DNA of 64,000 bases from Octopus bimaculoides (Eukaryota): contig NC_068981.1 of NCBI RefSeq assembly GCF_001194135.2, positions 44,140,840 through 44,204,839 of the forward strand, in the 5' to 3' direction. Positions 11,750-54,459 of this stretch are shown here, one piece after another. Each line of letters begins with the position of its first letter. The first letter of the stretch is position 1. The translations under genes and the position numbers were made by a program. A model generated the notes under the pieces. That model was not told the origin of the DNA. It was given only the letters and a program-made list of their open reading frames with translations, and ran no database searches.

Positions 11750-11832
11750 TTAATAAAATGTACATGCAAGAAAAAAAGTGTAGATAACAACTGCTGTAAA
11801 TGAGAACGTGGGGGACATTTTCGCTCTCGCAC
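11750..11832 (-). CDS. Terminal coding exon of unnamed minus-strand gene: (G)ARAKMSPTFSFTAVVIYTFFLACTFY*, GPI-signal-like hydrophobic tail
   Basis: Strong acceptor tactcttcctttgtatttttcag. Phase 1 matches the upstream exon. TAA at 11752-11750; AATAAA on the minus strand at 11624-11629. Confidence 0.8.
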
Positions 11833-12811
11833 CTGAAAAATACAAAGGAAGAGTAAAATTGAATGTAAATAATTATAGAAATGCGTATTTTAAAACAAAA
11901 GTGAGCCTCGCTTACTCATTTATCACATAATTCATGCAAAATTGTTGAAGTGAAAGTAACTGAAAATGAAATTATCGTTACTGAAATAATGATATTTATA
12001 CAATTAAATGACAACTCCCGAGTTTAATGTTGTAACCAAATACACAGGTTGGATTTGTCTTTATATCCTGAGTAATACAACATATAGGAACGAGAGATTT
12101 AACAATGTGTACTTCAATTTGTTGTACGTATATTATGAGAAAAGATTTCATTTCTTAACTTTGTAGGAAGAGAATATTAGACAACATAATGTACAAACAT
12201 TATAACATAATTCATTTGATCAAATGTATTGATTTTTACATTTATCATTGCTTGTACATGTCGAGGAATTTGTTAAACAATTTTGTATTTAAGTGTAAAC
12301 AAAATGTCGAAAAGTATTTTATGAGAAGTTCAGTCAAAATTTAAAATCAAGAATACCTTACACTTTTGGAATATGACATAGGAATAGATGACAAAATGTA
12401 GAAGTAAATAAGAATGAAAAACGCCAGTCCTGACGAAATTTAAAGGATTTTACCAATATATCTATTGTTGTCTTCTATAAGTTTGATACCTAAAGATTTT
12501 AATTTAGTGATCAGAAAATATGCTTCCGTTGTGTTTGCAGTCAAATAAATTATGTATTTTTTAGTGATAAAATGATTCTACCGGTGTACTAAATATCAAT
12601 TAAATGTGCGATTATAAAATACGACCGAACTATATATTATAGTTTGTCTACGATTTATGAGGTGGATTATTTTGTCTCCATGCGAAAAAATATGCAATAA
12701 TGAAAATGTAATCAAAATGTCCGTGCCTCACAAATATATTATTTTTTACATTTTGTATAAAAACATCAACCTCACGCAGAAGAAAAAAGGTTTCACACAA
12801 ATGCAACTAAC

Positions 12812-12879
12812 CACTCGTAGGATCCGGATTGCTTTCAAGATCATGCTTGTCTAAGCTCTGAGATTTGATGTTACAGAAC
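12812..12879 (-). CDS. Internal exon, 68 nt: (K)FCNIKSQSLDKHDLESNPDPTS
   Basis: Acceptor gatttttgtatttcag, donor gttagt, phase 2 to 1; open frame joins both neighbours. Confidence 0.8.
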
Positions 12880-13092
12880 CTGAAATACAAAAATCATGAA
12901 TATATAAATATATAGTTGAAATTTATCGAAAAACAAAGACGAAGACAGGTGTATGAACAATAAGTAGGTGTATTAGTTTGATGTTCGGGGAAAGGAAATC
13001 CATTTACATATCTGTGTATTTATGTAACACGAATAAGGAACAATTATTTTACATTTTGATAATTCAAATATAAAATAGATAGTTAAACTCAC

Positions 13093-13185
13093 TTGTGCTC
13101 GTCAGAGGTCATTTTCTTATTGTTGGCCAAACATTTCAGCACATATTGCTGAAAATCTTCAATCACAAAATTGAAAGATCTCAAA
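13093..13185 (-). CDS. Internal exon, 93 nt: (D)LRSFNFVIEDFQQYVLKCLANNKKMTSDEH
   Basis: Acceptor ttccttcatttcttgtttcttatgcaag, donor gtgagt, phase 2 to 2, open. Confidence 0.8.
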
Positions 13186-50495: not shown

Positions 50496-50738
50496 TTCTT
50501 CTTCTTCTTCTTCTTCTTCTTCTTCTTCTTCTTCTTCTTCTTCTTCTTCTTCTTCTTCTTCTTCTTCTTCTTCTTCTTCTTCTTCTTCTTCTTCTTATTA
50601 TTATTATTATTATTATTTGTAGTAGTAGTAGTAGTAGTAGTGGTAGCAGTAGTGGTAGTAGTAGTAGTAGTAGTGGTAGCAACAGTATTAGTAATAGAAG
50701 TAGTAGTAGTAGGAGGAGGAGGAGGAGGAGGGGGAGGA
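50496..50738 (+). repeat. Compound trinucleotide array (CTT)n-(TTA)n-(GTA/GTG)n-(GGA)n
   Basis: Directly visible. Confidence 0.95.
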
Positions 50739-52351
50739 GAAAATGCATGCAGTACATACAGTATCTGCTGTTATATTAAGTTGCATAATATGCAGCGTTT
50801 ATGTAAGAAGGCAGATTTCATTGTTGTAAAGGTTTCACTAAAATCATTTCTGATAAATGCAACATTCTGTGAACATTGAGTGATCAAAAAAATATTTAAC
50901 GAGACAATTAAATTATCTTTATACCCATAGGTACGTTTCCAATTGCAGAGATTGGTAGTTAATAATATTTATAGTCTCAAGTCTAAAATCTGTAATTAGA
51001 AGGAAGAAAAAAGAAACTGATGTAACACCTAGTGTAGGCTGTGTGTTATTAGATACCTGACCGTGAAATGAAATAACTTGCAGCCTTTCATTTATCATCT
51101 TAGCTTCACTTGATGAACTTAATTGTATTCAGTGAGGCCATATTATAAATGAATTGTCCCGTTGTTTCCGTGTTAAACGTGTTTGATCGATGACTGATTT
51201 GTCTGCAACGTGCATTGCAGTAACCAATTGCCATTCGGAAATAATTTACAGCTACTAACTATGCAATTATTTAGATAACAGAATCAAGTTTCATCATTGT
51301 GTATAATTGATTATGAACAATTGCTGTGTTGCATAGTTCAAATGTGAAACAGTGGCCCTTAAAAATCCACTCGATGACTATTTTCCAAAACGCACGTTTG
51401 GAACCAATGTACTTAATTAACTATTGTTTATATACGTTTATTCTACATAAAGTGTAAATTATCATCACCATGCTTTTGATTTTGATGTTGATATTGATGT
51501 TGATATGAATATGTTTTTGTTTTGTTCTTTTTTGACATTTTGACATTGATTTTGCTTTTGATTTTGATATTCGGTTAAAATAAAACTCTAAAATATATTA
51601 ATATCTATAGTTTCTTCCATTAAAGTTATGAAATTGCACTTCTTACTTTGAATATTAAGAAATTTTTACCTGATATTGTTCCTGTTTCTGTTAGCAGCAG
51701 CAATTTCAAAATGGCAGAGTCGCAGTACCAAAAAAAAAATTGGACTGTTTTCTATGTTTTCAATTTTTTTACTATTAACTTAAATTTCCCTTTGTTTCGT
51801 GAAATCAGTATGTGACAATTTCTCAAGTCTATTTCAGAGACTATGTATGTTCTGCACAATTACTTTGTAATATGGTAGTACTAGATGAAGTCAGGACACA
51901 GCACTTTCAGATGAAGGCATTGCTTAATATTTTAAGCAGTAGCAAGTAGCTTTGAACTATTATTGTGAAATTTTGATGCATTGAGTAATATTTTCTAGTA
52001 GTGTTACCTACCTATATAAGGTTGCTCATCCGAAGAAAGCTCTAACCTATAGATCTATGTTTCAAGTTACTGCAGAACTGACAATTATTTACAAAATTCT
52101 ACCTTTGTTTAAAACAAAGTAAAGTTCTCCCACTCGCTCTTATTAGGCAAAGTGCAAACTGAATGAAACATGTGCCAATAGAACAATGCTACCTGTTTGT
52201 GATACATGTAATGAATGCAATGAAAATAAGATGAGAGGAAAAAGCAAATAGGATTAGTTACAGATCAGAGATTACATTGCAGGGAAGAGAAATGCTGATA
52301 AGCTAAGAATTATGGAAAATGCTTAATATACAAACATACAGGAAAGATTAC

Positions 52352-52368
52352 CCTTGGAGTGCATTGGG
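52352..52368 (-). CDS. Candidate 17-nt microexon: PNALQ(G)
   Basis: Acceptor attctactctttgcag, donor AGG|gtaatc, phase 0 to 2. Confidence 0.4.
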
Positions 52369-54425
52369 CTGCAAAGAGTAGAATTTTTCCATTGCAAGGT
52401 ATTGATGAACGATTCTGGCCTTAAGAAAAACAGAATGTTACTTTTATTATATAGGAGAGACAAAAGAAGCTAACGTTGCAAAATGAAAATAAATGCAAGG
52501 ACAATGTTGACAGAAATATGTCAATGAGAATGTATAATGGTACATGCGTACACGACCATACATATATATATATATATATATATATACATACATATATACA
52601 TACATACAGGAATATATATATATGTGTGTGAGTGTGTGTGTGTGTGTATGTGTGTGTGTGTGTGTGTATGCGTGTTTGTGCATGTATACGTATATACATA
52701 GACGCAGCCACACGCACGCGTGTACACACACAAACACACAACACGCACACACATATACGAGCATATATGTGTATACATATTTATAAGTATGTAAATGTGA
52801 AAAGTCTAAATATTCGGCTAACCAATTTTATGAATGTAAACACAGTTTTTTTATTAAACAAATATTTAACATCGCTCCCAATGGAAAAAAAAAAAATTGT
52901 AAATTTATGTACATCGCTGTGTGAATGAGTCTATAATCACTTCTGCCACACATTCTCATATATACATATATTTACATATATAGTCAAATGTATATATTTA
53001 TTATATAAGTATACGCACACAAGCACGCACGCACTCACACACACACTCACAGACAGACAGACACACAGACACACTCACACACATCAACAGTCAAACGTCA
53101 TTGGAAAGTTCACTCAATTATTTTACATAGGAACCGTAAGAGTTGACAGTAACTTCAAAGTTTCAGATCGGTTCCATTTAAGAGTAAAATAACTAAGCCA
53201 AGACTGAGAGGTCACTGCCAGCTATTTCTTTGTATGCATATACTTCCATGTTACGTTTATATATATTTACATCCTTTCTTACTTATCCTTTCTTACTTAT
53301 TCATATCAATTTCAGTTAGAATGCTTGCATTAATGTACTTAAATAAATGGAAGAGATCTCTTGTCATATACATCTGGTTGTTATTTTGGAATATTGGTAC
53401 TGATGATTAATTCATCTTGCATATTATAATTGCACCACTCAAACGCAACCATTATACACATACATTCATGCACTTGCAGATAATATNNNNNNNNNNNNNN
53501 NNNNNNNNNNNNNNNNNNNNNNNNNNNNNNNNNNNNNNNNNNNNNNNNNNNNNNNNNNNNNNNNNNNNNNNNNNNNNNNNNNNNNNNNNNNNNNNNNNNN
53601 NNNNNNNNNNNNNNNNNNNNNNNNNNNNNNNNNNNNNNNNNNNNNNNNNNNNNNNNNNNNNNNNNNNNNNNNNNNNNNNNNNNNNNNNNNNNNNNNNNNN
53701 NNNNNNNNNNNNNNNNNNNNNNNNNNNNNNNNNNNNNNNNNNNNNNNNNNNNNNNNNNNNNNNNNNNNNNNNNNNNNNNNNNNNNNNNNNNNNNNNNNNN
53801 NNNNNNNNNNNNNNNNNNNNNNNNNNNNNNNNNNNNNNNNNNNNNNNNNNNNNNNNNNNNNNNNNNNNNNNNNNNNNNNNNNNNNNNNNNNNNNNNNNNN
53901 NNNNNNNNNNNNNNNNNNNNNNNNNNNNNNNNNNNNNNNNNNNNNNNNNNNNNNNNNNNNNNNNNNNNNNNNNNNNNNNNNNNNNNNNNNNNNNNNNNNN
54001 NNNNNNNNNNNNNNNNNNNNNNNNNNNNNNNNNNNNNNNNNNNNNNNNNNNNNNTTCCAATTGTAGTCGTTGACTTGGAAAAATAACAACTCGTAGTTTA
54101 CTTCATAGCACTAATCTATTCTTCATTCTGAACCAAAATATTTAATTATTACATTACTTTGTCTTATATGTCAATATTACTACACACACACACACACACA
54201 CACACACACACACACACACACATACACGCGCGCGCGCACACACACACTCAATCACATACTCACACACACAATGTATCCTTGAAATAATATTCCCAAATTT
54301 CATTAGTACACTATGTTTATCAATACGCTTGACGTTGAAATCAATGTCAATTCAACTATCGACATTTTATGACATTACAGTGATACTTCCATCCTCTTCC
54401 ACAATCTCACCGTCAGTGCACTTAC

Positions 54426-54459
54426 AACAATTGAAATTACAACCATTACATACGGCATG
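54426..54459 (-). CDS. Candidate first coding exon: MPYVMVVISIV (signal-peptide-like)
   Basis: Acceptor ctattacttttag, ATG at 54458-54456, donor gtaagt, exit phase 0. Confidence 0.35.

Follow-up and report, generated by a model that had tools for sequence, protein, structure and literature searches.

The window analysed here, in whose positions all coordinates are given, is a stretch of 64 kb of animal DNA, rich in AT (G+C about 31%) and interrupted by 13 runs of N, from Octopus bimaculoides (assembly GCF_001194135.2, contig NC_068981.1, positions 44,140,840 to 44,204,839). On its minus strand, from 30723 to 11750, lies the complete coding region of LOC106876345, which consists of 14 exons and codes for an O. 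bimaculoides 'uncharacterized protein' of 284 amino acids (XP_014780332.2, UniProt A0A0L8GK47; labelled P0001). A preliminary description made from the letters alone had proposed, on the same strand, one hidden gene of 43 kb (11750-54459); the last part of that proposal belongs to LOC106876345, and the rest is an over-extension of it. We put the probability of this reading at about 0.9. The gene already stands in RefSeq and UniProt, where it is functionally uncharacterised, and the finding is therefore not that of a new gene. A literature search on the LOC and accession identifiers found no publication naming LOC106876345 or its paralogues.

The identity of the locus follows from a direct comparison with its NCBI record (L001; GCA_001194135.2, CM046601.1, 44,142,589-44,181,562), which is the reverse complement of window positions 1750-40723 with 0 mismatches. 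The gene range in that record equals the coding span in the window (18,974 nt, 11750-30723), and no further gene is annotated there within 10 kb on either side of LOC106876345. When P0001 was compared with the window by tblastn, all 284 residues were placed on the minus strand, from 30723 to 11750. The gene model itself came from an exhaustive search across nearby AG and GT/GC sites, scored by translation to P0001 followed by a stop codon, and exactly one spliced model yields this product, with 14 coding exons and GT-AG borders for all introns. Most introns combine a GTAAGT or GTGAGT donor with a pyrimidine-rich acceptor. The RefSeq protein is thus reproduced exactly, whereas the model of the preliminary description has only ~131 of its 358 residues in common with it.

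The same organisation is found in two other octopus species. The O. sinensis orthologue LOC115220522 (locus L002) shows the 14-exon layout of LOC106876345, with identical exon lengths save for exon 9 (30 vs 24 nt), and the O. vulgaris locus (L003) is collinear with the window gene and keeps an intact open reading frame (ORF). Across the orthologues, the ORF, exon lengths and splice sites are kept, with the exception of the last acceptor in O. sinensis. Five N gaps lie within the gene, in introns 3, 4, 7, 8 and 9, and it had been suggested that exons may be concealed in such gaps. Both orthologous loci contain zero N and are collinear with window 11071-30886 at 82-87% identity, flanking every gap with order and orientation kept; no annotated orthologue exon falls at the positions of the five gaps, and the family alignment contains no block absent from P0001. 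Since the exon lists of these gap-free orthologues match the fourteen of the window, no exon hides in the gaps. Concerning the gaps elsewhere, one (35222-35859) lies outside the gene, and another (53487-54054, 568 nt) falls between the first two exons of the preliminary model, within its claimed span.

The exons of the gene are listed in Table 1. Exons 2-12 all have lengths that are multiples of 3 and share one common phase, and exons 5-10 form an uninterrupted series of six micro-exons of 24-39 nt, with introns of 0.7-2 kb between them. As exons of at most 39 nt account for only 22% of the coding sequence (189/855 nt), the micro-exons are a central cassette and not the bulk of the gene. Annotated models of the family include isoforms that skip exon 7 (O. 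sinensis X2, P0019, and the O. vulgaris model P0021), exon 6 (paralogue LOC106881480 X3, P0029, and X4, P0028) or exon 3 (paralogue LOC106881475 X3, P0003), and an alternative junction of 3 nt distinguishes GDSNKD from GDNKD among family members. The donor of intron 13 (GTTAGT, window 12804-12811) is the weakest of the gene and contains an in-frame TAG. If intron 13 were left unspliced, translation would stop after G258, at the putative glycosylphosphatidylinositol (GPI) site, and give a protein of 258 aa without the tail, ending in ...TSG. The model of the O. vulgaris orthologue (P0018) stops exactly after exon 13, though an intact tail exon is present ~1 kb downstream.

Table 1. Coding exons of LOC106876345 in the window, in the order of transcription, with the part of the protein that each encodes and the way each appears in the preliminary description.
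Exon	Position	Strand	Length	Encoded segment and remarks	Preliminary description
Exon 1	30674-30723	-	50 nt	ATG and predicted signal-peptide h-region MRGYIICFLIILYLSYT; 100% tblastn match	absent
Exon 2	28548-28631	-	84 nt	FSAKEQDAELLLMKYKTREHAWENFFM; within ORF 28454-28768	absent
Exon 3	26933-27028	-	96 nt	SWEMCSDIEDFEKKLAYSHMIIMDSMEKVWDEP; holds conserved Cys49	absent
Exon 4	23847-23984	-	138 nt	YIKRLLLFPIYHFKQ...KGKEFK(R); holds Cys104	partly found
Micro-exon 5	22401-22433	-	33 nt	PKRSVRSKRAI; tandem furin-type sites RPKR/RSKR	absent
Micro-exon 6	21699-21728	-	30 nt	ARLGKATLDI	absent; flanked by false exons
Micro-exon 7	19632-19670	-	39 nt	VSGAFSGFLGNIA; Gly-rich hydrophobic helix	exact
Micro-exon 8	18836-18871	-	36 nt	SEGLLRFLGIG(D)	exact
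Micro-exon 9	16793-16816	-	24 nt (O. sinensis 30 nt)	NADSSAK; frame kept if skipped	absent
Micro-exon 10	14772-14798	-	27 nt	EVRNVNDWK(D)	exact
Exon 11	13407-13460	-	54 nt	MKVTKNDITVVLLGDRRF; frame kept if skipped	absent
Exon 12	13093-13185	-	93 nt	LRSFNFVIEDFQQYVLKCLANNKKMTSDEHK; holds Cys222	exact
Exon 13	12812-12879	-	68 nt	FCNIKSQSLDKHDLESNPDPTS(G); holds Cys237; weak donor GTTAGT	exact
Exon 14	11750-11832	-	83 nt incl. TAA stop	(G)ARAKMSPTFSFTAVVIYTFFLACTFY*; GPI-signal-like tail	exact

The proposal of a 43-kb gene with 21 exons and a 358-aa product can be compared with this model exon by exon. All 28 peptide pieces of its 359-codon chain are present on the minus strand where they had been placed, and they are bordered by AG and GT-like dinucleotides. 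A micro-exon-rich minus-strand gene terminating at 11750 had been correctly recognised, and the boundaries 19632, 18871, 14798, 13185, 12879 and 11832 are identical to those of the unique GT-AG model. Six of the 21 exons are exact (7, 8, 10, 12, 13 and 14), one is half right, namely exon 4, for which the donor is correct and a false internal acceptor at 23896/7 loses 88 nt, and the other 14 found no support. The chain was also incomplete, seven real exons (1, 2, 3, 5, 6, 9 and 11) having been missed, while the unique model shows three exons placed within the gene (21827-21813, 21630-21619 and 19155-19089) to be false. The last of these requires a GC donor, is interrupted by an 860-bp indel relative to O. 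sinensis and falls in intron 7. This wrong chain stayed in frame because exons 2-12 are multiples of three sharing one phase: with such symmetric phases, omitting exon 9 (24 nt) or exon 11 (54 nt), or adding the 66-nt false exon, is frame-neutral. Nor was the gene hidden from the ORF track, as had been stated: besides its presence in RefSeq and UniProt, its exons 2 and 4 lie within ORFs of at least 90 aa.

A search with the joined peptide, which the preliminary description had itself suggested, gave a divided answer. Against 5.8 billion proteins, five matches were found at E<=10, all of them Octopus 'uncharacterized proteins' with P0001 as the best, and all five are confined to the C-terminal 44-46% of the peptide; residues 1-195 have no match at this threshold. 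The two motifs in which weak resemblances had been seen both lie in exons that were not retained. GVDG, compared with GDPD, sits in the false exon 19155-19089, and CP..LYW..CD, compared with chitin-binding type 2 domains (CBM14, PF01607), sits in the unsupported exon 46073-46011; neither has a Pfam match at E<=10. Of the possibly lineage-specific, Cys-rich cell-surface protein that had been envisaged, the lineage restriction is supported (homologues are found only in Octopus) and the surface location is plausible in view of the signal-peptide-like N-terminus and the GPI-like tail, but the mature protein has 4 conserved cysteines and is not Cys-rich.

The upstream part of the chain was compared with what arises by chance in the region 31-54.5 kb, on both strands, in the reversed sequence and in ten local shuffles. 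Under plain AG/GT rules, open candidate exons number 4,000-5,000 and join into in-frame chains of ~9 kb, in real and control sequences alike. Stricter rules shorten the chains to 6-7 kb (YAG and GTR) or 767-1168 nt (YAG and GTRAG), and when a pyrimidine tract is required in addition, the chain on the minus strand falls to 351 nt, within the 82-534 nt of the shuffles. The block 46011-47794, which had been called convincing (about 290 nt, 5 exons), was tested under rules satisfied by its own sites: a chain that reaches 290 nt is present in 76-87% of the 1784-nt windows taken from 31-64 kb (both strands, reversed, shuffle), and in 32% of windows in the plus-strand region 1-11 kb. The upstream in-frame chain is no better than chance. 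This holds for the N-terminal 60% of the proposed peptide, the block included, and for all eleven exons at or above 34045, none of which has a homologue.

As a whole, a single gene of 21 exons encoding a 358-aa Cys-rich surface protein has next to no probability left. Its pieces all exist, their flanks are splice-like and their frames chain; yet equal or longer chains arise by chance, residues 1-195 are without homologue, three internal exons are false while seven real ones are missing, and the real N-terminus, with its predicted signal peptide, begins at 30723 and is conserved in three species. Comparison with the other species tells against it as well. Upstream of the gene, as far as window 38.9 kb, patches of non-coding DNA can be aligned with both O. 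sinensis and O. vulgaris, and the proposed exons 34045-34089, 34402-34440 and 36902-36994 lie between the aligned patches, with no counterpart in either species (tblastn E>1), although the non-coding DNA next to them aligns. Synteny with the O. sinensis intergenic region (L002, L004) ends near 38.9 kb. The preliminary description had extended a real 3' part some 24 kb upstream through chance AG...GT open segments in transposon-rich intergenic DNA. In AT-rich, intron-rich animal DNA, real micro-exons can thus be recognised by eye, but long false chains are built as well, since the frame survives wherever exons are symmetric and AG/GT sites abound; real chains are told from false ones by homology and by collinearity between species.

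Very improbable, too, is that the block 46011-47794 or other upstream pieces belong to a separate, unannotated lineage-specific gene or non-coding transcript. The block does consist of five segments with canonical AG/GT sites, and the annotation look-up reached window 40723 only; against this, there is no protein homologue at E<=10 and no Pfam match, chains as long are present in most control windows of the same size, as given above, and the block adjoins repeated LINE-tail copies and microsatellites. Since synteny stops near 39 kb and 40-46 kb carries repeats, everything placed at or above 46 kb lies past the synteny break.

These repeats are of several kinds. Window 40900-45724 (plus strand) contains several nested or tandem copies of a reading frame resembling the tail of a LINE (long interspersed element) ORF2, with the motifs LDRKxRKLL...HP+xDxxRLYLPRKEGGRGL and SGLKxETEG; two copies (43529-44142 and 44983-45724) are 72-77% alike. 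A strong skew of A over T and long (AAT)n-type microsatellites are found at ~39.95-40.05 and 43.15-43.35 kb. A Pfam search of the ORFs in 40-46 kb gave no match, Pfam not covering this part of ORF2, and the probable LINE-tail identity is suggested by the repeated translated motifs and their self-similarity. Closer to the gene, the promoter-proximal segment 30885-34000 holds two sets of local repeats: 30936-31420, 32300-32753 and 33440-33849 are mutually 82-87% alike, and 31554-31745, 33262-33437 and 33846-34000 are mutually 90-94% alike. Repetition is likewise seen in the corresponding segments ahead of the orthologues in O. sinensis and O. vulgaris.

LOC106876345 belongs to a family whose members include, besides the orthologue LOC115220522, LOC115220523, LOC115220626, LOC115222984 and LOC115223027 in O. 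sinensis, LOC106881475 and LOC106881480 in O. bimaculoides, and CAI9733802-805 and CAI9738190-192 in O. vulgaris. Homology to the close members is full-length (E 1e-83 to 1e-127), and identity to the 11 other aligned family members ranges from 23 to 71%. A word-indexed protein search returned seven clusters only, and a profile search of 1.84 billion representative proteins returned eight proteins, all from Octopus save for one coral discoidin-repeat protein (P0014); the latter was rejected as spurious, being a low-complexity match repeated ten times over ~50 residues. The family would thus appear to be an orphan one, detected only in Octopus (bimaculoides, sinensis, vulgaris), an observation rather than proof, as the library's coverage of other cephalopods is uncertain. 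The alignment has 85 invariant columns. The close paralogues and the more distant P0015 and P0017 have in common a predicted signal peptide, the HAWENFF, LLFPIY and RFLRSF blocks, four cysteines, a polybasic site and a putative anchor at the C-terminus.

In O. sinensis, the orthologue stands head-to-head with the paralogue LOC115220523, with the two ATGs ~13 kb apart, and a head-to-head partner is also present in O. vulgaris. LOC106876345, in contrast, has no such adjacent partner: no exon or intron of it was found beyond window 39 kb, and the O. bimaculoides paralogues are on another chromosome record than LOC106876345 (58 Mb vs 200 Mb). This separation from the paralogue cluster reflects either a real relocation or a scaffolding join. 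The introns of LOC106876345 and LOC115220523 can still be aligned with each other, which suggests a recent duplication. Between LOC106876345 and its O. sinensis orthologue, identity is 84.5% for the coding sequence and 71% for the protein, with dN 0.157, dS 0.240 and dN/dS 0.65.

One could ask whether the locus is a decaying or neutrally evolving duplicate, split from the paralogue cluster and devoid of function. The dN/dS of 0.65, an exon identity about equal to that of the introns, the different chromosome record and the synteny break near 39 kb would all fit such a view. We regard it as improbable nonetheless: in O. bimaculoides, the ORF, 26/26 splice sites and all exon lengths are intact, the ORFs of the orthologues are intact at a dS of about 0.24 with one in-frame indel, and conservation is strongly patterned, as the invariant columns show.

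The 284-aa protein has only two hydrophobic segments by hydropathy, at residues 1-20 and 266-284. The first resembles a signal peptide, with the small residues T and S at positions -3 and -1 before A20; the second ends the protein. The C-terminus has the layout of a GPI signal, namely S257-G258-A259, a spacer of 7 residues (RAKMSPT) and 18 hydrophobic residues to the end, and G258 and A259 are invariant in the family alignment. The mature part has the conserved cysteines C49, C104, C222 and C237, and there is no N-glycosylation sequon in the protein. Furin-type motifs are present in tandem: the codons of RPKR123-126 lie at the junction of exons 4 and 5, and those of RSKR129-132 inside exon 5. 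Across the six closest family members, R129, K131 and R132 do not vary, and the distant paralogues P0015 and P0017 have the polybasic sites RRKRR and RRTKR. The R-X-K/R-R motif of proprotein-convertase (furin) substrates is thus present, cleavage itself being a prediction.

Concerning the fold, an AlphaFold2 run with 6 close sequences was unusable (pLDDT 40), and a 12-sequence alignment was used instead. The resulting model is all-helical (mean pLDDT 69, pTM 0.68), with a confidence of 80-92 at residues 30-115 and 190-220 and low values over the polybasic loop and the linkers; the polybasic motif is located in a segment with pLDDT <50 and is predicted to be exposed. Foldseek searches of PDB and BFVD gave no match at E<=0.001 (best E 0.7-1, TM-scores <=0.2), and the family profile found nothing at E<=10 among PDB sequences. 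In Pfam, neither the joined peptide of the preliminary description nor the 12 family members matched a family, with sub-threshold noise only (Syntaxin_2, MbeD). Two ideas on the segment that follows the polybasic site were dropped. A class I viral-fusion-protein-like arrangement (furin site, hydrophobic Gly-rich peptide, anchor) has no BFVD or PDB match, and the Gly-rich hydrophobic character is lost in distant paralogues, the segment being a bundle helix in the model. An antimicrobial peptide, AIARLGK...FLGIGD, would have a net charge of 0, is unconserved in distant paralogues and is a packed helix in the model.

Taken together, these features suggest how the product might work. The predicted N-terminal signal peptide would take it into the secretory pathway, where both halves would build an all-helical bundle, with C49-C104 and C222-C237 as the likely disulfides. 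A furin-type convertase would cleave at RPKR/RSKR of micro-exon 5, in the exposed polybasic loop, and a GPI anchor, added at S257-G258-A259, would tether the protein to the cell surface. Skipping of the symmetric cassette micro-exons would vary the segment after the cleavage site, and read-through of the weak last donor, with its in-frame TAG, would give a soluble form without the tail. Fast evolution and recent duplication would be in keeping with a protein that is secreted or on the surface and acts where an interface changes rapidly; such evolution and lineage restriction are typical of immune, reproductive or sensory interface proteins and do not discriminate among these here. We give this joint picture, from secretory entry to the soluble read-through form, roughly even odds.

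The soluble form might also be the rule rather than the variant, the main product being then a secreted precursor from which furin cleavage frees soluble fragments, while the exon for the hydrophobic tail is seldom included. When donor 13 is read through, translation ends directly after G258, the O. vulgaris annotation ends at the same point, the O. sinensis assembly has a damaged last acceptor and the family member P0007 is without tail. In addition, since the two Cys pairs each lie within one half, the halves would not be disulfide-linked. We consider this unlikely, as O. bimaculoides and O. vulgaris both keep an intact tail exon with a canonical acceptor, distant paralogues retain a hydrophobic C-terminus, and the peptide after the cleavage site has a net charge of 0 and packs as a helix in the model.

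Several points weigh against the reading of the locus as a complete, functional gene with a tethered surface product, and are gathered here. The RefSeq and UniProt proteins are computational models, so that the gene model is one predicted from sequence. At the last acceptor, the O. sinensis assembly has CAAG (L002 ~45725), as against CAGG in O. vulgaris (L003 ~48355) and O. bimaculoides, and the O. sinensis RefSeq protein would consequently require a non-canonical site there, or else the assembly is in error. The dN/dS of 0.65 is marginally below 1 (a rough z-test on counts gives ~1.9), and the exons are no better conserved than the introns, with 84.5% coding vs 82-87% intron identity. As to the product, the structure model is of moderate confidence and comes from a 12-sequence alignment, and GPI anchoring, the disulfides and cleavage by furin are predictions based on motifs. 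The family is not uniform either: unlike LOC106876345 with its GPI-like end, some Octopus paralogues have a transmembrane (TM) helix with a basic tail, as in the distant P0013 (YHYRRK), or no tail, as in P0007, while P0009 and P0010 are without the polybasic site.

LOC106876345 can be compared with two known systems. The micro-exon genes (MEGs) of schistosomes have symmetric exons of 3-81 bp, long introns, secreted products and variation by exon skipping (bioRxiv 10.1101/2023.06.21.545858), and they show accelerated evolution (PMC4350168). LOC106876345 resembles them in its predicted first-exon signal peptide, predicted secretory product and runs of short symmetric exons with long introns, as well as in exon-skipping variants, fast evolution and lineage restriction. 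It differs in that there is no sequence homology and in its predicted folded helical domain with a membrane anchor; moreover, with 189/855 nt in exons of at most 39 nt, it falls outside the MEG definition, by which most of the coding sequence lies in symmetric micro-exons. The second system is that of the furin-processed GPI-anchored surface proteins, such as glypicans and RGM, in which a signal peptide is followed by an internal R-X-K/R-R site and, at the C-terminus, by a GPI signal. LOC106876345 has the corresponding putative signals in the same order, a likeness in processing logic only, as no similarity in sequence or fold was detected.

A broader proposal, which we put forward tentatively as one possibility, is that the family, restricted to Octopus and recently expanded, would comprise helical surface proteins of a new fold that are processed by furin and tethered by GPI or a TM helix; the micro-exon cassette (33, 30, 39, 36, 24 and 27 nt) and the stop-containing weak last donor would diversify the protein and switch it between anchored and secreted forms. 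If true, cephalopods would have an analogue of the strategy of the schistosome micro-exon genes. On account of its detection in Octopus only, its quick evolution, a fold without PDB match, the putative convertase site and anchor and the skippable micro-exons, LOC106876345 is a modest but concrete candidate for studies of cephalopod lineage-specific surface proteins.

Other repeated elements and ORFs were seen in and around the gene, and an Rfam scan of the whole window gave no match. A SINE-like dispersed repeat of about 160-260 nt is present at 527-791, 7675-7830, 16521-16786 and 50007-50146, and the O. sinensis loci contain many further copies. In the window, one starts 6 nt inside intron 9, at the same position in O. 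sinensis, and does not overlap micro-exon 9; because the repeat begins within the intron, an origin of exon 9 by SINE exonisation was ruled out. Intron 1 contains a 98-aa ORF (28884-29180, minus strand) with a GIY-YIG domain above the Pfam cut-off (25.4 vs 22.6 bits), which resembles a fragment of a Penelope-like retroelement. Two ORFs, 60393-60827 and 37923-38288 (minus strand), give weak mariner/Mos1-type helix-turn-helix matches (HTH_48 and HTH_29, below the Pfam cut-offs) and are probably decayed fragments of Tc1/mariner transposases. Finally, just 3' of the stop codon, an inverted repeat (6757-7749 / 10157-11143, 95% identical over 994 nt) encloses the N gap 8158-8843 and an ORF (8893-9259, minus strand) with a C2H2 zinc finger and a LINE-tail-like end; its two arms may mark where a large inserted element begins and ends, or may stem from an inverted duplication.

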